DNA of 64,000 nucleotides, from the sequence record NC_061441.1, one strand, 5' to 3'. Under the pieces are notes generated by a model. The model worked only from the letters and a program-made list of their open reading frames with translations, was not told the origin of the DNA and made no database searches. Shown here piece by piece: positions 3,230 through 47,444 of the stretch. How positions within the stretch are numbered: the first letter of the stretch is position 1; each line of letters starts with the position of its first letter. The translations under genes were made by a program, and so were the position numbers.

Positions 3230-3264
3230 TTTTGGTTCTACCTCACAGTCCTTTTATCTGACTG

Positions 3265-3272
3265 AAATTAGC
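3265..3272 (-). promoter_or_regulatory. Putative phage late-promoter motif GCTAATTT
   Basis: Intergenic copy 36 nt upstream of the 3229 start; same octamer recurs upstream of several structural operons. Confidence 0.5.
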
Positions 3273-3294
3273 GAACCACACGCCCTGCGAGGAT

Positions 3295-4323: not shown

Positions 4324-5021
4324 AGCACTTCTCCTCTCTCGTCAGTGACGTAAGGAATGCCGGCGCCTTTACCCAATCCATGTCGTAAAGCCCAAACAGT
4401 GTCGGCATTCTCCTGCACGAACACTAACCCTTTGACTTGCACATCGGACGTTGCATTCTCCAGTACCTCAACGCGCTTCTCAAGAAGCTCGGCATCGGAT
4501 TGCAGCACACGAATAGCAGACAGGTTAGAGTTAACGCGCTGGTTCATGTTGTTGAACATGGTGAAGAACGAGTTGTTCATCGCCGTGCGAACGCCGTCCG
4601 TATAGGACTTTGGAATTAGTTCATCGTTATCAAACGTTGTTACGCCTGTACGCGCGAGAACTTTACCGGTAAGACGTCCACCACTTGCGCTGATAATCTG
4701 AGGAGCAGGCAAATCAGCCTCATCCCAGATTTGAACAGTGGTCATCACCGTATTGTAGTCGGTCTCTTCCTGCCACGTATTCTTATACGGTGCAGTAGCC
4801 GTTTTGGACTTACGACGCATGACTTTCTTATAGCCAGCGTTCGATCCATCGGCGATGATCCAGAGACCGTTCAGTGGAAATACGTGAGTAATAGGTTCGG
4901 CGAACGAAAGAATAATCGTAACGTCGGCGCCTACCTTGTACGCAATATCGTTCGACGCAGAAAGCCCTTGCTGTTGGGCAAGAGCAATCAGCGTGTCCAC
5001 GTAGTTAGTCAACTGGCTCAT
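4194..5021 (-). CDS. Fibre-associated virion protein (275 aa)
   Basis: Fibre repeat (ELIPKSYTD), short coiled coil, C-terminal 'WALRHGLG..PYVTDERG' module related to the C-terminus of 44..1669. Confidence 0.65.
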   Translation of the reverse strand: MSQLTNYVDTLIALAQQQGLSASNDIAYKVGADVTIILSFAEPITHVFPLNGLWIIADGSNAGYKKVMRRKSKTATAPYKNTWQEETDYNTVMTTVQIWDEADLPAPQIISASGGRLTGKVLARTGVTTFDNDELIPKSYTDGVRTAMNNSFFTMFNNMNQRVNSNLSAIRVLQSDAELLEKRVEVLENATSDVQVKGLVFVQENADTVWALRHGLGKGAGIPYVTDERGEVLWPETVNPAEADPDNVLLLTFLEPVSGVAQLMYMPIADETIQP

Positions 5022-5481
5022 CCGAAACTCCTAACGATTGTAAAAGTGAAGAACTTGTATCGGAGAAGGCCTTAGCTATTGCTTTAGCGGCAACCTTATC
5101 GACAACGAGAGTGCTGATTCGGCCTTTGGTGTTGCATACAATTGTCTGCGGTGCATACTGTGCAAGCGCCAAAGCGAATAGCAGATGGTTGCCTAGATCA
5201 CCTGAGATAGAAACTTCCACGTCAAGTTCAGGCACGTAGATGTTCTGGTTGATTTCGGCAACAAACTGCGCCAGCGCAACAGGGTCGAACTCAGGGAGCG
5301 CTGTATCATAATCCTCAACAAGATCAATCTGTCTTGTTTCGGGATAGTAACGAAATGCAGCAGGGTCAGAGATGATGCGACCAAATAAATCGTCGCTCAC
5401 CTCGATGCAATACTCATCCGTCTTTTCACGTACACGACCAACAATGCTGTTGTTCGCTGGATTGATTCTGATAATAGGCAT
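5005..5481 (-). CDS. Probable tail-fibre assembly/chaperone protein (158 aa)
   Basis: Small acidic ORF directly downstream of a fibre gene; size and position typical of fibre chaperones. Confidence 0.5.
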   Translation of the reverse strand: MPIIRINPANNSIVGRVREKTDEYCIEVSDDLFGRIISDPAAFRYYPETRQIDLVEDYDTALPEFDPVALAQFVAEINQNIYVPELDVEVSISGDLGNHLLFALALAQYAPQTIVCNTKGRISTLVVDKVAAKAIAKAFSDTSSSLLQSLGVSDEPVD

Positions 5482-5483
5482 CG

Positions 5484-6305
5484 TTAGTCTCCCACTGCCG
5501 TGTACCAGAAGTCCCAGCCTACAGTATTGGTGCCGCTGGACTTAATGGTAAAGCCACCTAACAAGGCGTTCTCGTTCACTGCACTAGTACCATCAAGGTT
5601 GTAGAGCGTAAACGTCTTAGCCTGGTTCGTTGCAGCATTCAAGAACGTAATCTGAATGCTAAGGCAGCGGTTGATGAACGGGCTGTTGAAGATAACGTGA
5701 ATGGTATCAGTAGTTGATTTGTTCACGATGCGACCCATGTTCTGGGTAAAGCCCGTGTTCATATCTCTGTTACTACCGACCCATGCGTTTGGAATCACAG
5801 CACCTGTTACAGGGTCAAGTGCTTGCGCTGTTCGATACTCGTCGATAGCAGCATCACGCCCCGGGTTACCAGTAGGACCCGTCGCACCAGTAGGACCGAC
5901 TGCTCCAGTGTTACCAGTAGCGCCAACAGGACCAGTGTTGCCCGTAGGACCATTACGTCCTCTTGGACCACGAGGGCCTGGGCAGCCGTCTTCACCGTCA
6001 CGACCGTCACGACCGTCAGCACCAGGCAGACCGCGTAAGCCGTCTTTACCCTGCTTGCCTTCGCGCCCTGACTTGAGCTGGTCGGCAGTAGGCAAACCAA
6101 TAACGTTCGTCTGACTGCCATCAGGCCAAATGAGTGTTAACGTACCTGTTGTCGTATCGAACTGAGCACCCTGAGCACCTGGAATCTTCGCAGCTTCTTG
6201 CGGACTGATAAACGCGACCGCAGTAGAAGTCTTCTTACCTAGCACTTTACCGACGGGGTCATTACCACCGTCGATGAGTGAAGGATTAATGCGTGTTAAA
6301 GACAT
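5484..6305 (-). CDS. Collagen-like fibre protein D (24 Gly-X-Y triplets, C-terminal beta-sandwich tip domain)
   Basis: GREGKQGKD...GNPGRD repeat; N-terminal FDTTTGTLTL..GLPT domain; C-terminal 'VIFNSPF...GFTI...WDFWYTAVG' typical fibre-tip domain. Confidence 0.8.
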   Translation of the reverse strand: MSLTRINPSLIDGGNDPVGKVLGKKTSTAVAFISPQEAAKIPGAQGAQFDTTTGTLTLIWPDGSQTNVIGLPTADQLKSGREGKQGKDGLRGLPGADGRDGRDGEDGCPGPRGPRGRNGPTGNTGPVGATGNTGAVGPTGATGPTGNPGRDAAIDEYRTAQALDPVTGAVIPNAWVGSNRDMNTGFTQNMGRIVNKSTTDTIHVIFNSPFINRCLSIQITFLNAATNQAKTFTLYNLDGTSAVNENALLGGFTIKSSGTNTVGWDFWYTAVGD

Positions 6306-6315
6306 GGGTGAGCTC

Positions 6316-6519
6316 CTAACCAGTCAGTGTTGTCCAATCAGGTTGACCCGATTGCCCGGCTTCTGGGTTTTTGACTTTCGTGTTATTGATTGTCATACGA
6401 ACCCAACGGACAGTACCGTCCGCATCTTGCCACCGAACCTTCGTGCCACCGTATGCTAAATTAGCTACCCATCTGTCTCTGCTTGGGTCTTTGAATGCTA
6501 AACGTGCATATGCAGGCAT
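6316..6519 (-). CDS. Small Trp-rich fibre adaptor protein (67 aa)
   Basis: RBS TAAGGAG; three short (R/K)xxxxxxW repeats like the N-terminus of 9449..11467. Confidence 0.7.
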   Translation of the reverse strand: MPAYARLAFKDPSRDRWVANLAYGGTKVRWQDADGTVRWVRMTINNTKVKNPEAGQSGQPDWTTLTG

Positions 6520-6528
6520 AAGTTCTCC

Positions 6529-9405
6529 TTACTCGATCTCACTTGGTTCCCAGCACAGAATAGGACGGCGCCATACTTGGAACACACCGATAGGGTTAGA
6601 ACGGAAGTCATCAATGTACGCATCGAAAGTACGACCGCCACTGTTACCGCTTTTCATCAGTGTCCGTAAGTCCTGATACCAAGAAGCACGTCCACCTGAG
6701 TCTGCTTCGAACAGTCCTTCCCACACCATATCAAAAGCGCCATTCCATGCGTTGAAGTGATGAGAAGAATATGCACCATCACCAACAGAACACAGCACCA
6801 TGTACTGGTAGTCTTTCACGCACGGAATCATGTAGTCATTACCGCGTGGAATAGCCGTGCCATTGTTGTTGAAGATACACTCCCAACCAGTACGGTCTGC
6901 GGCGCCCGTGGTCAAGAACAGAGGACGACGAATGATCATCATAATCCCGTTCGCCCAGCCGTCATTGCTTGACTTCTCGCAGTACGCATTGCAGCGTAAC
7001 GCACGGTCTACCGTAAACGTGGTAGAGTTTGAGAAGTCGCGGCAGTAATAGTTCGAACCCCACTTAGGCAGATACTCTGCTGGTGGCACGAAGAAGTGAC
7101 GTTCAGCCAATTCAACTTCACCGTAAGCATCATACGCAAACACGATGTACTCGAAGCCTGCTTCAATCTGAATGTTATGGCCCTGTGAGCCATAGCCACT
7201 CCACTTCCACACAACCTGCCAATCGTTTGTGTCTCGCTCAGGCATTTCCGTGATGAGCTGATACGGACGCTCGTACACATGCCACACCTTCCCTTCTTCT
7301 GTCGTGTTGATGTACAGAGAGTTAGGGTCGTTGATGTTACCGTTAGACGTACCACAGTAAACTTTATGCGATGCACCAGCAGTGTTGTAGATAGTGCCTG
7401 AGCCGATACCTGCGAACATATCCCAGTTCATCATCAGGTGCGATGTACACATTTCGTTCTGGCCTGCACCATCAGATGTTGAGAGCAGATACTCATTGAG
7501 GTCTTTGAACGCATAGCGCACATAGTTAGAGCCAGCACGGTTAACGCGGTGTACCCAGTCATGCGATTGAACTTTCGGCACAGGGAAGCATGGGTTAGTG
7601 ACAGACACGACGAAGTTTTTAGTTTCGTACATCGGCAGTTTCTTGAAGCGGTTATCACGAATTGTTACCGTGTGCTTCATGCCATATGTCTGCGCACCGT
7701 CCATACCGCCTAACACTTTATAGTACGACTCATGCGCACTCTTGGTGTTTTCGTACAGACTAGTGATGCCAAGCCCAACGTTGCCGTCACGGTCAGTGCC
7801 GCAGCAGAAGGGCACGTTACCTGAATCGAAGTCAAAGCCAACAGAGTAATAGCTGTCAGGTGAACTTGATTTAGGGCCCCAGTAGAGTTCGGTGTAAGCA
7901 GAACCCTCACCGATACCTGGCTCACCGAACACGCAGTATGCAGCACGATACACATACTGACTGCCCTGGAACACACGGCGTGATGCGCCAATGCGATACA
8001 TAGCAGCAGGAAGACCGCCCTGTACACGGTTAACGTCAGCCGTATCATACGACACAACGAAGACATAACAGTCGGTGCCGATTGAGTTGAGAAACGCAGC
8101 ACAGGCAGCAGCGTTAGTTGCACCTGGAGCTGTACCTTCGGCCGATGCGTGAATGTCGAACACACGGCGCTCAAGCAACGCAAGGTCAGACTTACGAATC
8201 TTATAGACGTTCAGGCCACGCGTATCTCGGTACGTCACACCATTATAGACAGTGTAGCCATAGTCACCAGTGTCTAGGTAACGCTGATAACCAACTACGT
8301 GCGAGAACAGTTTACTACGTGCTTGCAGCGACTGACCATTCTGATTCGACCAACTAACCGATACATCACCAGCAGCCATACGTGCTGCCCAGTCATCAGG
8401 CTTGTATGGGTATGTGGTAACATCGAAGTTCACACCGTACGCGGAGCCTGGTTCTACGCAGCATGGATTACGATAGATGATTGGTGGATCAATCACTATG
8501 TCATCAGGGATATCGACTTGACCGCAGTACAGTTGCTTCCACGTACCAGGCTGACCTCCGAGCGAACTAGGTCCAGCAGCAGGTGTTGTGTTGAACTGAT
8601 AGATAGCAGACGTGCGGTAGTTAATCTGGTTGTGAAGCTGAGGAACGTTCGTCCACGCAATGTGATTACCGAACGAGTTAATGCTTTTGTCGTGTGCGGC
8701 AGGAGTCGAGACAACATAAGCCTGACCGTTACTGCGAATGCCGAGTGGGTTGAAGATAGCGTTGAAGTTAACGTTACCCTCGTAGGCATTCTTCTGCAAT
8801 ACAATCAGGTGAACTCCATTGCGGTGCGCCTCACGTAAAGCAGTGAGCATCGCTGTAGGCATACTCTGGTTAGTCGCAGACAACAGCAGCATGACACAAC
8901 TGAACTGTTTGAAGTAGCGATAGTCACCGTTGTAGCCATAGGCGCCTGCGTTAATCTCTTGCCAGCTATGCGCCAACATATCGAGAGGCATACGTTGCAT
9001 GTAACCAACGAGCTGGCCCCACGACTCCATGGCCGTATCATCGTTGACAGGAGCAAGGTCGGAGATGACCAGCATCGTACTGCCGTTTGTGATGTTTGCG
9101 TTGAAGCCACGCTGGGTCAGCAGGTGGCGGAACACACCCATGTTGTTGATAGACTTGTTACGGTAGTTGCCCATCCACCCGTAGTTAGAATCTACAAGAG
9201 GGCTACCGTCTCGAACAAATCGACCATTCATATAAACAGAGGCAAAGCCGCAGACGTATGCTTGCGCGTGTCCGTCCACTACGAACGAAGTAAAGCGGGA
9301 AGCATCTACCGCCATCGCATTAACAGCAGCCTCAGAGCCATTGCCGGGACTACCACTAAACACAGGAGTGATGCCTCGTGCGTACAGGCAACTTTGTTGC
9401 AGCAT
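6529..9405 (-). CDS. ILEI/PANDER (GG-lectin)-domain virion fibre protein (958 aa)
   Basis: ILEI-like segment RGLNVYKI...FDIHAS...CYVFVVSYD...YRAAYCVFGEPGIGEG; C-terminal tandem aromatic-rich repeats. Confidence 0.7.
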   Translation of the reverse strand: MLQQSCLYARGITPVFSGSPGNGSEAAVNAMAVDASRFTSFVVDGHAQAYVCGFASVYMNGRFVRDGSPLVDSNYGWMGNYRNKSINNMGVFRHLLTQRGFNANITNGSTMLVISDLAPVNDDTAMESWGQLVGYMQRMPLDMLAHSWQEINAGAYGYNGDYRYFKQFSCVMLLLSATNQSMPTAMLTALREAHRNGVHLIVLQKNAYEGNVNFNAIFNPLGIRSNGQAYVVSTPAAHDKSINSFGNHIAWTNVPQLHNQINYRTSAIYQFNTTPAAGPSSLGGQPGTWKQLYCGQVDIPDDIVIDPPIIYRNPCCVEPGSAYGVNFDVTTYPYKPDDWAARMAAGDVSVSWSNQNGQSLQARSKLFSHVVGYQRYLDTGDYGYTVYNGVTYRDTRGLNVYKIRKSDLALLERRVFDIHASAEGTAPGATNAAACAAFLNSIGTDCYVFVVSYDTADVNRVQGGLPAAMYRIGASRRVFQGSQYVYRAAYCVFGEPGIGEGSAYTELYWGPKSSSPDSYYSVGFDFDSGNVPFCCGTDRDGNVGLGITSLYENTKSAHESYYKVLGGMDGAQTYGMKHTVTIRDNRFKKLPMYETKNFVVSVTNPCFPVPKVQSHDWVHRVNRAGSNYVRYAFKDLNEYLLSTSDGAGQNEMCTSHLMMNWDMFAGIGSGTIYNTAGASHKVYCGTSNGNINDPNSLYINTTEEGKVWHVYERPYQLITEMPERDTNDWQVVWKWSGYGSQGHNIQIEAGFEYIVFAYDAYGEVELAERHFFVPPAEYLPKWGSNYYCRDFSNSTTFTVDRALRCNAYCEKSSNDGWANGIMMIIRRPLFLTTGAADRTGWECIFNNNGTAIPRGNDYMIPCVKDYQYMVLCSVGDGAYSSHHFNAWNGAFDMVWEGLFEADSGGRASWYQDLRTLMKSGNSGGRTFDAYIDDFRSNPIGVFQVWRRPILCWEPSEIE

Positions 9406-16391: not shown

Positions 16392-16417
16392 AGAACTCCT
16401 TGGGTTTTAACTCATCT

Positions 16418-16425
16418 AAATTAGC
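16418..16425 (-). promoter_or_regulatory. Putative late-promoter motif GCTAATTT
   Basis: Immediately downstream of a terminator and 27 nt upstream of the 16391 start. Confidence 0.55.
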
Positions 16426-16432
16426 GTAAATG

Positions 16433-16469
16433 AAAAAGGGAGCCGGAACATGTGCTCCAGACTCCCTTT
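16433..16469 (-). terminator. Rho-independent terminator
   Basis: GGGAG/CTCCC stem followed by a T5 tract on the minus strand, just after the stop of 16473..21008. Confidence 0.75.
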
Positions 16470-16472
16470 ATT

Positions 16473-22470: not shown

Positions 22471-22893
22471 TTACTGGGACCTCATGGCAAACGTAACGGA
22501 TTCTTTCGATTCGAGCTTAGGACAGCGCCACGTAACGATACACACGTAGGTCTGTTCGTATTGCTCGCTCATTGTACACGCTGTCTGCACGTTGGTCACA
22601 TCATTCGTAAGACCGTTAGCTGGGTCTTCGAGCGCAAGACGCATGTACGTTGCAATCCAGTCGGCTGTAGTCTGGTCGAAAGGTTCAAATAGGTATTGAT
22701 ACACGTCAGCACCAAACGACTCACGCCATTTGCGAGACTTTTTGCGAGTACCAATGACCATTAAAATCTTCTGGACAATGCTGTCCATGTTCTGCACGTT
22801 ATCACGCGGTTCAAGTTGAATCCACGCATTGATATCACAATAGACTCGCTCGCTGATAGGAACGTCTATTAGTCTGACTCCGATTCCTGCCAT
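22471..22893 (-). CDS. Baseplate wedge/sheath-initiator protein (T4 gp25-like)
   Basis: SIVQKILMVIGTRKKSRKWRESFGADVYQYLFEPFD matches the gp25 pattern (I..T..GER...P.FG..L...LFEP). Confidence 0.85.
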   Translation of the reverse strand: MAGIGVRLIDVPISERVYCDINAWIQLEPRDNVQNMDSIVQKILMVIGTRKKSRKWRESFGADVYQYLFEPFDQTTADWIATYMRLALEDPANGLTNDVTNVQTACTMSEQYEQTYVCIVTWRCPKLESKESVTFAMRSQ

Positions 22894-23183
22894 TAGCCAA
22901 ATCTCACGTTAGAGCTACCGTTAGAAGCTGTGTCGCCACAACTGTTTCCATCACCAGCACGTTGAGCGGGCTTGCCGTTAACACGCACACTTGAGCTTGA
23001 TGTTGCTTTACCAACATGCGGAGGTTTCTTAGGCTTCCAGTGTGGCTTATAGGCGTCACCGCTGCGAACGCTTCCCTTGCCGTTGACAAGCACATTCGTT
23101 GATGCCTGTGCTGGGACGACAGGGAAATAACCGCTGTGACCTGTAGACAGATCTGTGCCAAGTCGAATAGCTTTCTGACCCAT
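22893..23183 (-). CDS. PAAR-repeat spike tip protein (gp5.4-like)
   Basis: RLGTD..GH, STNVLVNGKG..RSGD, VRVNGKPAQRAGD..CG..SNGSSNVRFG; RBS GAGGAG. Confidence 0.9.
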   Translation of the reverse strand: MGQKAIRLGTDLSTGHSGYFPVVPAQASTNVLVNGKGSVRSGDAYKPHWKPKKPPHVGKATSSSSVRVNGKPAQRAGDGNSCGDTASNGSSNVRFG

Positions 23184-23206
23184 GATTATTCTCCTCTGTT
23201 AGACAC

Positions 23207-23214
23207 AAATTAGC
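23207..23214 (-). promoter_or_regulatory. Putative late-promoter motif GCTAATTT
   Basis: Between a terminator and the PAAR start (24 nt upstream). Confidence 0.55.
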
Positions 23215-23228
23215 TTGTTAGGCCGCAG

Positions 23229-23263
23229 AAACAAAAACGGGCAGCCTCATGGCCACCCAGTTT
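23229..23263 (-). terminator. Rho-independent terminator closing the non-coding locus
   Basis: GGGTGGCC-ATGA-GGCTGCCC followed by GTTTTTGTTT on the minus strand. Confidence 0.8.
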
Positions 23264-23292
23264 CTGTGCTTGGATTTGTGTCGCTCATTCCC

Positions 23293-23451
23293 TCACACCC
23301 GAAGCGAGTGCCCGACGGCTTTAGCCGATGAGCCGGAATGAATGTCCGAGAGTGACGATACACCTGGTATCGACAGCATGTGACTCTCGGGCCATGATAG
23401 CAATAGACCAAGCATCGCTATTGCCACCAGCGACACTAAGAACAAAAGCAT
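23293..23451 (-). CDS. Unannotated small membrane peptide, 52 aa (MLLFLVSLVAIAMLGLLLSWPESH...HSLRV)
   Basis: GAGGAG RBS 6 nt upstream of ATG; first 19 residues form one TM helix; below the ORF-track length cutoff. Confidence 0.5.
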   Translation of the reverse strand: MLLFLVSLVAIAMLGLLLSWPESHMLSIPGVSSLSDIHSGSSAKAVGHSLRV

Positions 23452-23510
23452 GTTTCGCTCCTCGTGTCTTACTTTAAATAACTACGTTTGATCAACTGGT
23501 ACTTTGTTCT

Positions 23511-23538
23511 GCTCGTCGCCCAACATCACTTGAGTATC
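23511..23538. repeat. 28-nt direct repeat, copy 1 (GCTCGTCGCCCAACATCACTTGAGTATC)
   Basis: Identical to 23900..23927; flanked by complementary GTTCT/AGAAC. Confidence 0.95.
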
Positions 23539-23899
23539 AGAACGTTTCTCTGTCTTTACCGCCTACGTTGCGGTTATACCGCGCACGACACTCACATATC
23601 AAGGGCACTCGGCGGAAAGGGTAAGTTCCGAATGTCCTAACAACATGAGTGAAGCGAAGGAGGTCCCGTATCGGTGATCTGCAGGGGTTCACGCACTTTT
23701 AACATTCGCTTCTTTGTGCATTAGATCTTTCGTGGACTCGAATGCCCTGCTAATCATTCCACTAAGATATTTCACACCCTATTGTGAACGGGTCAAGCTA
23801 TGGCAGCACGTCAGCACGGCAGGCAGCGGACACACTCCATTAAGCATTGTTAAGGGCAATGCTCAACAGGCTGTGAACAGCTTGGTCGGAATAGGTTTC

Positions 23900-23927
23900 G
23901 CTCGTCGCCCAACATCACTTGAGTATC
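23900..23927. repeat. 28-nt direct repeat, copy 2
   Basis: Identical to 23511..23538; flanked by complementary TAGGT/ACCTA. Confidence 0.95.
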
Positions 23928-24497
23928 TCGACCTAAACTTTTACTCTCCACACGACTACAAGGAAGAATCGCGTTTCTGTGACCTGCGGATGTTTATCAC
24001 TCTCAGACTCTTGAGCCACTATCTGGAAGCTAACACGCTGAGTCGTCCGCTGGATGACGTGTTAGCTCTCCTCTCCTCGTCGTGCGAAGGCCAGAGTGGT
24101 AGCTGATGGATTGTCATGAAGGAATCCCTGGGGGTCATCGCTTCCCAATGCACACAGGGTGAAAGCCTATGCACATCAGGCAGCGTCTGCTGCGGTACTG
24201 CTGTCCCCTTGAGAGTGGCCATAGCGTTGAGTTTGCGCTTCGCCAGTCTACGTGCCTGGAAGGTATCTGCCGTGCCTATGTCTGCATTCAGCATGGTTCC
24301 TTTGCTGGGCCTTTTGGGCGTCAGCGACAGAGCAGATATTCATCACGTGGGTGCCGGGGTTGTCCTCACGATTACAGAGCGAACTCAAACCGGCTGGAGG
24401 CCCATATGCTCAGGAATGCACATACGAGTTTACCAGAAGAACGGCCCCGCTATGGTAGCGTTCTTCCGAGACATACTGATATTACTATCTGCAATTT

Positions 24498-24507
24498 TTA
24501 TTTACAG
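24498..24507 (-). promoter_or_regulatory. Putative promoter element CTGTAAATAA
   Basis: AT-rich inverted-repeat context (ATCTGTAA..TTGCAGAT); identical decamer upstream of the ligase gene. Confidence 0.35.
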
Positions 24508-24514
24508 ATTTTTC

Positions 24515-24577
24515 TTAACCTTCGCCCCAACCACAAGAAGCAGGTTTACCGTCACCGTAACCGATTTTAAACAGCAT
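24515..24577 (-). CDS. Unannotated 20-aa peptide (MLFKIGYGDGKPASCGWGEG)
   Basis: AAGGA RBS overlapping the stop of the upstream gene; codon choice (GGT, AAA, GCT, TCT) like the highly expressed genes. Confidence 0.45.
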   Translation of the reverse strand: MLFKIGYGDGKPASCGWGEG

Positions 24578-24586
24578 AGTTAGTCC

Positions 24587-26347
24587 TTAGAACGCTTTAC
24601 GTTCGATGTTGGAGTAGTACGTGTCATATGGTTCGCTGTACAGCTCTGGGCCGCGCTGCGCACGAATGGTCACGTAACCAGTGTGTCGGTTGAACGCGAT
24701 GATTTCGACTGTAGGCTGTTTCGGCTTGATGGTCGAATAAATCGGAGCGTTCATGGTTGGTTCGTCTGTCTGAATCTTATTTACAGATTGCAGAGCAGCA
24801 CCAGATAGCGTAGGCAGATTGAATCTGATTTCCGCACGTTTCTGGCCGAACGCAATTTTGATTACACCAGCAGGAAGCTCAACGCCGTTCTGTTTCAGAT
24901 ACGCGCCAATGCGACGAGCGATACCAGTCAACTGATCGCGTGTGCGAGGGTCGAATGTACCTTCGAAGCTGATTGCTTCTGCTGGCTGGCGCACGGACAG
25001 ATGCAGACCTGTGTTGAAATAGCCTTCGGTCAGCAGTCGCAGCACTTCCTTCACGACTTCTTTCGTGTTGGATTTGATGGCAGCGATTTTGAGTTCAGGC
25101 ACGTCAACCTTAATCGGGTCACGCAGTTCGGTCTGGTTGTCCATGTAGCCGAGTGATACGTGTTTCGCTTTGGTGTACGTGTGCTGCAACACACCAGTAG
25201 CGCGAATCAATACAGAGCCAGACTTAGACTGATCGTACAGTTCGTCGCTGGTGGTTGTGCTAAACAGGTAGTAGTCTGTAGGCACTGCCATGCGATTAAC
25301 TGCTTCAACTGCTTTCGTCTGTACTTCTTTTACAGTTTTACCGAAGACAACACGACTACGGTTAGGCTGTGCGGCCGAGACAGGGAAGAAGGCGCCGTAT
25401 ACAACCTGCACGTTCTTCTGAATAGGCTTGGAAGAGTTTACCTTGATACCGCCTTGCAACGGAGGTAGCTTCACGCCCACCAGCTTACCGTTAACGATAG
25501 CTTTGTTTGCTACAACAGGCTTGAGGCCAGACAGCAGTTTCTGCAACTCAGCGCCATCAAGAATCTTCTCAAGCGGAACAGCAAGGTTCTGCGGCAGATA
25601 GTGTTTCTTGCGGAACGAGTAGATAACCGTGTCTTTCTTGATCTGCAAAGGCGTAGCCATGTTGCGACCAATCTGACCTACAGGCTGGAACGTGTTCTTC
25701 TTGTCATCCGCAATGGTACCGAATGCTTTCGTGAACTCAGACTGTCCGATGATGTTAGCCACACGCTGGTGACCACGAACGATAAACACGATCTTCGGTT
25801 CATCTTTCAGGCGCAGTTCGTAACGGTCACGGTTCAGATAAACCATGCTGTACTTATCGCCTTTCTCCAGCTCAAGGTCATACTCATCGTTGGCGTCATC
25901 AACCACGACTTTCTTACCTTGATACGTTGCGTACTGACGAGCAGCAGACTCGGAGGCAATCTCCATAGCCTTACCAGTATTCGACAGCGCAACAGCAAAG
26001 TCAGTTACAGCAGGCATCAGGTCAACAGACGATGCAACCGCATAACTGTTACGGCGTTCACCGAGATGCAAATGCACGGCACTTGAAGCAGACATGAATA
26101 CAGTGTTACCTGTGTCTTCATGCTTACCTGCAAAGTTCATGCCGCTAATGCGTTCGATGATGTTGGCGCTTAACGCAGGAAACGCGATATCGCTACCAGC
26201 AGTGAAGTCAAAAATCTCACCGTGACGCCATGCGTATGCCACGTTGTTCGAGCTAAGACCGACAAACGCATCGCCGATCTGCTTAACAGTCATCGGCATG
26301 ATACTCAAGTCACGAATGACCGAGTTTTGCTTTTGAATAAGATTCAT
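24587..26347 (-). CDS. Putative internal head/virion protein (586 aa)
   Basis: N-terminal region with S-x-S motifs, followed by the repeated YxYxG..l..GD.. domain shared with three other ORFs. Confidence 0.6.
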   Translation of the reverse strand: MNLIQKQNSVIRDLSIMPMTVKQIGDAFVGLSSNNVAYAWRHGEIFDFTAGSDIAFPALSANIIERISGMNFAGKHEDTGNTVFMSASSAVHLHLGERRNSYAVASSVDLMPAVTDFAVALSNTGKAMEIASESAARQYATYQGKKVVVDDANDEYDLELEKGDKYSMVYLNRDRYELRLKDEPKIVFIVRGHQRVANIIGQSEFTKAFGTIADDKKNTFQPVGQIGRNMATPLQIKKDTVIYSFRKKHYLPQNLAVPLEKILDGAELQKLLSGLKPVVANKAIVNGKLVGVKLPPLQGGIKVNSSKPIQKNVQVVYGAFFPVSAAQPNRSRVVFGKTVKEVQTKAVEAVNRMAVPTDYYLFSTTTSDELYDQSKSGSVLIRATGVLQHTYTKAKHVSLGYMDNQTELRDPIKVDVPELKIAAIKSNTKEVVKEVLRLLTEGYFNTGLHLSVRQPAEAISFEGTFDPRTRDQLTGIARRIGAYLKQNGVELPAGVIKIAFGQKRAEIRFNLPTLSGAALQSVNKIQTDEPTMNAPIYSTIKPKQPTVEIIAFNRHTGYVTIRAQRGPELYSEPYDTYYSNIERKAF

Positions 26348-28847: not shown

Positions 28848-28876
28848 GGACGTCTCCTTATACGATAGTCTCAGCT

Positions 28877-28884
28877 AAATTAGT
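28877..28884 (-). promoter_or_regulatory. Putative late-promoter motif variant ACTAATTT
   Basis: Intergenic, 30 nt upstream of the 28847 start. Confidence 0.45.
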
Positions 28885-28888
28885 GTGC

Positions 28889-41782: not shown

Positions 41783-41824
41783 CGTGAATCTCCATGAGAA
41801 TGGGCATCGTGAAACGACTATAAC

Positions 41825-41832
41825 AAATTAGC
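41825..41832 (-). promoter_or_regulatory. Putative late-promoter motif GCTAATTT
   Basis: Intergenic, 43 nt upstream of the sheath start. Confidence 0.55.
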
Positions 41833-41838
41833 GTATTG

Positions 41839-47382: not shown

Positions 47383-47411
47383 AAATTTTTAGTCGTTGAA
47401 TCGACAGGTTA

Positions 47412-47419
47412 AAATTAAC
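47412..47419 (-). promoter_or_regulatory. Putative late-promoter motif variant GTTAATTT
   Basis: AT-rich intergenic gap upstream of the scaffold-capsid operon. Confidence 0.45.
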
Positions 47420-47444
47420 GATTGCAGAAAAAATTCAGGTATTT

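Follow-up and report, generated by a model that had tools for sequence, protein, structure and literature searches.

Twin copies of a conserved hairpin in a predicted large non-coding RNA of Erwinia phage pEa_SNUABM_16 and related jumbo phages

Why should a phage carry the same 28 nucleotides (nt) twice, in a place between two structural genes where no gene is apparent? The question is raised by Erwinia phage pEa_SNUABM_16, a 267-kb jumbo phage of the genus Alexandravirus, of which we analysed a 64-kb stretch (64,000 nt of record NC_061441.1, hereafter the window). The repeat, GCTCGTCGCCCAACATCACTTGAGTATC, stands on the plus strand at 23511-23538 and again at 23900-23927, exact in both places and with a spacing of 389 nt, as an original prediction made from the letters alone had described. 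That prediction took the pair for a duplicated RNA module, and our results agree with it: the repeats are very probably two copies of a conserved hairpin that belongs to a large structured non-coding RNA.

No further match to the repeat was found on either strand of the window when up to three mismatches were allowed, and shuffled sequences are expected to give none. Copy 1 is flanked by GTTCT and AGAAC and copy 2 by TAGGT and ACCTA (letters read directly; the positions are those of the outer stems in Table 1). Identity between the two copies stops within about 33 nt, and their surroundings are therefore not a recent duplication. In the relatives both copies sit at orthologous positions, with a spacing that ranges from about 350 to 392 nt. 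A recent segmental duplication was rejected on these two grounds, the short extent of identity and the orthology of both copies across lineages that are 63-85% identical.

The copies lie in a 1403-nt gap without genes (23184-24586), in a window whose plausible genes are all on the minus strand. A gap of equal size is present in 46 phage records, and we aligned 17 of these sequences, representing about 12 distinct lineages with 63-99% identity to the window and including Alexandra, Dickeya phage AD1, Y3 (Sasquatchvirus) and the SNUABM_7/13/34 group. Across the 17 sequences the gap is about as well conserved as the structural genes on its two sides. Its substitutions are spread evenly over the three codon positions (82.4/85.7/83.1), without 3-nt periodicity, as against the strongly periodic 31.8/5.8/6.1 and 58.6/10.8/18.7 of the flanking genes. 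Selection therefore acts on the gap, but not on a protein, and hidden coding capacity was rejected on account of the flat codon-position pattern. The earlier statement that no plausible open reading frame (ORF) reads through either copy holds in this sense: mechanically called ORFs do run across the copies (23488..23640 and 23714..24106 on the plus strand are examples), yet the substitutions in the gap lack the period of three. GenBank lists "hypothetical protein" coding sequences in the gap, which differ between relatives and are absent in some; those annotated at 24019-24294 (minus strand) and 24116-24583 (plus strand), together with their equivalents in relatives, are inconsistent and show no codon-periodic substitution. 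The coding sequences annotated inside the RNA locus are, judging from these alignments, probably spurious. ARAGORN found no tRNA or tmRNA in the window.

Folded as an alignment, the gap has the properties of an extensively structured RNA. The RNAalifold consensus reached -566 with 356 pairs on the minus strand and -465 on the plus strand; 94% of the cells are paired and 137 of the 356 pairs show compensatory change, when any two pair types are counted. Because RNAalifold itself rewards covariation, three controls were run. In the real gap compensatory pairs number 9.4-9.5 per 100 nt, about three times the level of the coding and shuffled controls, and the energy is -0.38 to -0.41 kcal/nt; the corresponding values are 1.5-4.1 and -0.23 to -0.30 kcal/nt in flanking coding DNA, and 3.0-4.7 and about -0.2 kcal/nt in the column-shuffled gap. 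In a slide control, every 3' partner was shifted by 1-3 columns with the phylogeny kept, and compensation was counted more strictly, against the commonest pair. In register there are 132 compensatory pairs (517 cells, 94% paired), and after sliding 26-44 pairs (37-108 cells, 36-42% paired). More than 50 helices are predicted, the twin hairpins being two among these, and the better supported ones are listed in Table 1. The structured RNA spans about 1.24 kb and extends far beyond the copies on both sides, so the suggestion that the copies mark out a unit of about 360 nt had to be given up.

The hairpin module itself has a constant order of parts: an outer stem, an invariant G-C pair, a 3-nt bulge A-(U/A)-A, an inner stem of 3-4 bp and a loop of 15-17 nt. 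In the RNA sense copy 1 reads GUUCU-G-AUA-CUC-[AAGUGAUGUUGGGCGAC]-GAG-C-AGAAC; copy 2 has the same core, which a CGA/GAA internal loop splits from the outer stem UAGGU/ACCUA. The apical loop keeps an invariant pattern, A-GUGA-N-GU-N-GG-N-C-N-A, while the stems drift. In an alignment of 25 distinct copies of the module, 78% of the cells are paired, which sliding lowers to 32-39%; 8 of 10 pairs change on both sides, and the covariation score is 0.355 compared with 0.164 in shuffled alignments, a value reached by none of 500 shuffles. At core positions 1 and 28 the joining pair is G-C without exception in this alignment. Within the core, positions 3-23 and 4-22 covary as base pairs, and compensatory changes are seen at three of the four pairs of the stem CUC(A)/(C)GAG; one pair of the inner stem is U-A in 14 copies, C-G in 10 and U.G in 1, and another is C-G in 22 and A-U, U-A and U.G in 1 each.

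The closing helices had been noted to differ in sequence and yet to keep pairing in the two copies, and the same is true across relatives, where both copies have undergone compensatory substitution. The outer stem of copy 1 occurs as GUUCU/AGAAC, AUUCU/AGAAU, GAAUU/AAUUC, GAAUC/GAUUC and GAGUU/AACUC, and that of copy 2 as UAGGU/ACCUA, AUGUAGA/UCUACAU, ACGUAGA/UCUACGU and UGCAGA/UCUGCA; in the longer form of the latter, compensatory change affects 7 of 7 pairs across lineages. Given the module alignment without further guidance, RNAalifold selects the CUC/GAG inner stem, and single-sequence minimum free energy folding returns the covariation-supported design in AD1, SNUABM_34 and Y3 (z = -3.0 in Y3). 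A different inner hairpin, CUCAA-GUGAUG-UUGGG, had been drawn in the original prediction. It displays no compensatory change and has one pair broken in 10 of 24 sequences, and because CUCAA/UUGGG and CUC(A)/(C)GAG share their 5' strand, the two are mutually exclusive. When a covariance model of the module was run on the window, the two repeat copies were its only matches (71.8 and 62 bits); in related phages it finds two sites in the SNUABM_7/34 group and one (copy 1) in Y3.

The two copies are not identical everywhere. Copy 2 is the same in most lineages. In the AD1-type clades five positions set copy 1 apart from it: the bulge is AAA, the inner stem has C-G where copy 2 has U-A, and the closing pair is U-A. 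In the SNUABM_16 clade copy 1 has the copy-2 state at all five. This distribution suggests that the identical window copies go back to a short gene-conversion patch, or to convergence, in the SNUABM_16 clade, in addition to purifying selection over the long term.

As had been proposed, the RNA is more likely to be read from the minus strand. Four lines of evidence point that way: a terminator, the orientation of the adjacent genes, the better consensus fold and the G.U pairs. In a strand-symmetric fold from which G.U was disallowed, 56 cells are G.U in the minus sense and 19 in the plus sense, and the U.G pair of 2910A and several G.U pairs of the outer stems exist in the minus sense only. Putative signals stand at both ends of the conserved structure. 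On the 3' side an intrinsic terminator is kept in 17 of 17 lineages with compensatory changes in its stem. On the 5' side lies a 33-nt block, AATCTGTAAATAAAAATTGCAGATAGTAATATC, which is identical in at least 15 of 17 lineages, Y3 and SNUABM_34 included, and directly follows the stop codon of the upstream 586-aa gene (in SNUABM_16/22 an insertion comes between them). The block is unique in the window, has one copy per genome and is restricted to this phage group. A scan for sigma-70 promoters gave no minus-strand match in the gap, and the block is not of the canonical sigma-70 type. We infer that the 5' end of the RNA is just downstream of this invariant block and its 3' end at the T-run of the terminator. 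A 16-base pattern taken from the block, tried on public collections, returned about 200 loci, nearly all of them chance matches according to an nhmmer screen. Elsewhere in the window, at 47383-47444 (minus sense), stands CTGCAATCGTTAATTTT, which is similar to the 3' half of the block, TTGCAGATAGTAATAT, if a 1-nt indel is allowed. The two may belong to a promoter type other than the late one, although with two instances chance is possible.

A number of observations weigh against our reading and set its limits. The single-sequence folds of the window copies are no better than those of shuffles (z of -0.58 and +0.80), and that of copy 2 favours the CUCAA/UUGGG hairpin mentioned above. Copy 2 of Y3 has diverged, which means that two identical sites are not universally required. 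The alignment is a sequence-based MAFFT alignment of 17 sequences from about 12 lineages, the folding program is one that rewards covariation, and significance was judged against coding, shuffled and slid controls. As to the strand, coding controls lean in the same direction (18 vs 8), which makes the G.U evidence moderate, and the fourth position of the inner stem is A.C in the minus sense in SNUABM_16-type copies. Finally, promoter, strand, ends and transcription are predictions from sequence; no transcriptome for these phages was found in the literature.

Table 1. Features of the gap and its borders in window coordinates, in order of position.
Feature	Position	Strand	Remarks
PAAR spike gene	22893-23183	minus	one border of the gap; gp25-like and baseplate-wedge genes beyond
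GCTAATTT motif	23207-23214	minus	between terminator and PAAR start; candidate late promoter of PAAR/baseplate genes
Intrinsic terminator	23228-23259	minus	9-bp GC-rich hairpin 23259-23238, then TTTTTGTTTC
Predicted structured non-coding RNA body, about 1.24 kb	23228-24472	minus	conservation, no codon periodicity, covariation
Supported helix	23346-23390	minus	compensatory pairs
Module copy 1, 3'-proximal in the RNA	23497-23553	minus	outer stem 23506-23510/23539-23543, continued by G-C 23511/23538
Copy 1, inner parts			bulge 23535-23537; inner stem 23512-23514/23532-23534; loop 23515-23531
Helix	23584-23656	minus	8 of 12 pairs compensatory
Helix	23837-23869	minus	8 of 13 pairs compensatory
Module copy 2, 5'-proximal in the RNA	23886-23944	minus	outer stem 23892-23896/23931-23935
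Copy 2, inner parts			internal loop 23897-23899/23928-23930; G-C 23900/23927; bulge 23924-23926
Copy 2, apex			inner stem 23901-23903/23921-23923; loop 23904-23920
Helix	24027-24068	minus	9 of 10 pairs compensatory
Supported helix	24136-24189	minus	compensatory pairs
Supported helix	24212-24249	minus	compensatory pairs
Strongly supported helix	24250-24348	minus	20 pairs, 10 with compensatory change
Helix	24401-24428	minus	9 of 10 pairs compensatory
33-nt 5' block	24478-24510	minus	essentially invariant; candidate promoter- or operator-like element with TAATAT
Insertion, about 75 nt	24512-24586	minus	SNUABM_16/22 only, absent in the other 15 lineages; outside the conserved RNA
586-aa gene	24587-26347	minus	other border of the gap; phrog_32352, KMPT-N domain

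What could such an RNA do with the same hairpin twice? The fuller reading, in which we place slightly more confidence than doubt, is that the two hairpin cores sit in an RNA of about 1.24 kb that acts as a scaffold in trans and docks one partner twice. The RNA would be transcribed from the 5' block on the minus strand, from about 24472 to 23228, and its function in trans would be that of a scaffold, the twin modules serving as equivalent docking sites that present the same surface of bulge plus loop two times. The docked partner would most likely be a protein, as a dimer or as two protomers, and less likely another RNA. We suggest a scaffold in trans because the loop is constrained where the stems are free, because it has no internal complement, and because the RNA has predicted transcription signals of its own. 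Complements of the loop at other places in the RNA are shared by 10-11 of the 17 lineages at most, and none was found in the minus-sense transcripts of the window; a loop that is held while its stems drift, with no conserved intramolecular complement, fits an external ligand.

The absence of a conserved complement also bears on a second explanation, which we judge unlikely but would put ahead of the remaining ones, namely that the loops make RNA-RNA contacts, either tertiary or by symmetric intermolecular kissing, and so aid folding or multimerisation as in ROOL and GOLLD. Symmetric kissing loops that switch from one palindrome to another are documented for OLE and GOLLD (bioRxiv 10.1101/2024.12.08.627333). 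The loop studied here contains a quasi-palindrome, GUYG-GG-CGAC, whose variable positions remain compatible with pairing (in place of U.G, several lineages have C-G, and copy 1 of SNUABM_2 and SNUABM_3 has U-A), and in copy 1 of SNUABM_34 three substitutions produce another one, UCGU-GG-ACGA, a pattern reminiscent of those loops. A loop so rich in G and U, however, has self-complementary arms of at least 4 in about 70% of its shuffles; the palindrome is therefore not significant and was dropped as evidence for a kissing dimer. The AD1-type copy 1 moreover lacks one of the four palindrome pairs, and the conservation of any complementary RNA site stops at the level given above.

We consider it improbable that the 1.24-kb RNA is instead a leader acting in cis on the PAAR and baseplate genes, with the hairpins as sites for antitermination or attenuation factors. 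The order of elements does resemble that of an attenuator, with a promoter-like block, a structured RNA and an intrinsic terminator 45 nt upstream of PAAR, followed by the gene. The antitermination RNAs of phages, lambda nut boxB and HK022 put, likewise have two similar hairpin elements, and like the module they show one small hairpin twice per phage genome, with a constrained loop and free stems. Those elements are nevertheless short, belong to two operons, act in cis on RNA polymerase and have loops of 5 nt, whereas the copies described here are 389 nt apart in one terminator-ended RNA with loops of 15-17 nt. With its 1.24 kb and over 50 predicted helices, such a leader would also be far larger than any known attenuator. 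Two features of the interval between terminator and PAAR argue in the same direction. The motif GCTAATTT, shared with five other structural-gene upstream regions, separates the two, and in AD1, 2910A/SNUABM_33 and SNUABM_3 an extra small ORF stands between them.

That motif makes PAAR seem to have a late-type promoter of its own, to judge by its placement: the leader that carries it is invariant in relatives, and in the window the motif also precedes five other structural-gene starts, once immediately after another terminator. With its own late-type promoter motif assigned to PAAR, the RNA would therefore be a separate unit of about 1.24 kb. Regions with the form (C/A)GCTAATTT(A/G) were noted in the minus sense at 3230-3294, 6306-6528, 16392-16472, 23207-23214, 28848-28888 and 41783-41838, two of them directly behind an intrinsic terminator, and this form is a candidate for the late-promoter consensus of the phage group. 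The extra ORF of AD1, 2910A/SNUABM_33 and SNUABM_3 has about 41 codons and its own ribosome-binding site, and lies in an interval of about 130 nt from the conserved leader to the PAAR start.

Still less probable, in our estimation, is that the copies are processing or self-cleavage sites which free an RNA of about 390 nt from a longer precursor. Two identical sites in one transcript could indeed yield two identical cuts, a possibility that the original prediction had raised. Against this, conservation and covariation continue unbroken on either side of each copy, the spacing varies, and no self-cleaving ribozyme or other Rfam family gave a match at E up to 10 (two weak similarities are treated below). 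Least credible of all is the operator or iteron that had been offered as an alternative, a duplex-DNA site for a DNA-binding protein in replication or packaging, for instance: an exact 28-bp repeat held across lineages does resemble protein-bound DNA, and the nearby invariant 33-nt block could be another such site, but a DNA site has no need of the complementary flanks that in both copies change by compensation, nor of core positions that covary as pairs, the genes on either side share one orientation, there is no AT-rich stretch, GC anomaly or skew inflection (for which an origin-like element was rejected as well), and the entire gap behaves as structured RNA.

Returning to the scaffold docking one partner twice, we compared it with systems already described. 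Large ornate phage RNAs are a known kind, and GOLLD and ROOL, encoded by phages and prophages, are non-coding RNAs of several hundred to more than 800 nt with extensive structure supported by covariation (bioRxiv 10.1101/2024.12.08.627333). They are the closest known kind to the RNA of pEa_SNUABM_16, in which two marks of an ornate phage RNA are found, namely a non-coding substitution pattern and covariation-supported structure beyond that of controls. Expression as a discrete RNA, a further mark, is predicted from the invariant 5' block and the conserved terminator. The differences are nonetheless substantial. No match to GOLLD or ROOL in sequence or structure was seen here even at E up to 10; the RNA is longer, about 1.24 kb, whereas that study gives more than 800 nt for GOLLD, the largest of its three ornate classes (bioRxiv 10.1101/2024.12.08.627333); and it is encoded among baseplate genes instead of near tRNA islands, in one narrow phage lineage. 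OLE, a bacterial RNA with conserved protein-binding sites, is likewise a large structured scaffold, but has about 600 nt and known protein partners, and Rfam gives no match to it here.

Smaller RNAs offer more partial parallels. The sponges of the CsrB/RsmB type are scaffold RNAs that repeat a loop motif and bind several copies of one protein; they have many GGA loops, unlike the two modules here, which have GGG in most variants. The pRNA of phi29 is also a structured phage RNA encoded among morphogenesis genes and forms part of an assembly machine. It is, however, only about 174 nt long and oligomerises via complementary loops, and no homology to it is seen here. The loop sequence GUGAUG resembles box C (RUGAUGA) of C/D-box RNAs, and the archaeal C/D-box sRNA sR17 (RF01144) gave a weak cmscan match over copy 1. 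A C/D-box or k-turn identity was rejected as chance, since the match has 15.7 bits against a gathering threshold of 36 (E = 1), box D (CUGA) is missing and the motif is apical rather than in a k-turn.

The RNA fits no described family. Rfam 15, whose families include HEARO, group I and II introns, RNase P, tmRNA, 6S, riboswitches and self-cleaving ribozymes besides GOLLD, ROOL and OLE, returned no match at the gathering threshold in the 64-kb window; permissive filters applied to the gap gave only sR17, as above, and BTnc231 (E = 5.3), and four divergent homologues matched only unrelated families with E > 1. No paper describing this RNA was found, although a large computational survey (e.g. 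the supplements of the virus csRNA survey, PMC10690425) may list part of it. We regard it as possible, though doubtful, that the RNA represents a new giant class of ornate phage RNA which would work as a ribonucleoprotein or a self-assembling scaffold during infection, for example in the morphogenesis of baseplate or tail, given its fixed place between the 586-aa and PAAR genes, or in host takeover, with the twin hairpins as its two identical docking points. Very few large structured RNAs besides rRNA are known in bacteria and phages, and OLE, ROOL and GOLLD, solved recently, proved to form unexpected RNA-only assemblies. The present candidate combines clear boundaries and many well-supported helices with cultivable phages and a tractable host, and its twin identical hairpins provide a simple built-in handle for genetics and pull-downs.

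The distribution of the RNA is narrow. With an nhmmer profile, the full RNA is found only in Alexandravirus, Sasquatchvirus and the SNUABM_7 group, all jumbo phages of Erwinia and Dickeya; two partial contigs, one metagenomic and the other a divergent one from IMG/VR, are matched as well. For the module, a degenerate pattern that takes in every variant has no occurrence in 185,579 bacterial and archaeal species genomes, and in IMG/VR it is found in this phage group only, with at most two per genome. The copies always lie at this locus. Mimicry of a host element, or an origin from the host, was rejected, the pattern being absent from the species genomes and blastn giving no match in E. coli genomes or plasmids.

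Several minor features of the locus were also recorded. Within the RNA, short near-invariant blocks (minus sense) occur at 23553-23564 (AGGCGGUAAAGA), 23670-23682 (GCAGAUCACCGAU), 23984-23995 (AAACAUCCGCAG), 24043-24054 (UCCAGCGGACGA) and 24174-24185 (CGCUGCCUGAUG), and GCGGA (24046-24050) and UCCGC (23987-23991) could pair with one another. The sequence GAUCACC is found at the 3' end of 16S rRNA as well, which may be coincidence. Upstream, the insertion of SNUABM_16/22 contains a mini-ORF of 20 codons, MLFKIGYGDGKPASCGWGEG. The 586-aa protein has a KMPT-N domain as its only identified feature, with no relative in PDB and no NCBIfam match, and the single-sequence AlphaFold model has a predicted local distance difference test score (pLDDT) of 33, too low for use.

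In more distant genera the synteny from the 586-aa gene to PAAR is kept, with small ORFs and unannotated stretches in between. In SNUABM_5 (Rivsvirus) a diverged form of the 5' block, a single module built in the same way, the 3' domain of the RNA and the terminator are retained, at positions 4429-4455, 5007-5033, 6286-6425 and 6609-6640, with a run of small annotated ORFs between them. Its module-like hairpin has an AUA bulge, a CCU/GGG stem and an AGUUGG apex; this apex, which Y3 has too, bears a mere resemblance to a D-loop. The RNA may thus be older than the Alexandravirus group and have been split or rearranged in SNUABM_5. In Yoloswag (5902-6113) the first 22 nt or so of the 5' block are followed at once by a weak match to the 3' domain. 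Both lie under the 54-aa gp109, and the gene annotated there may in fact be a shortened form of the RNA.

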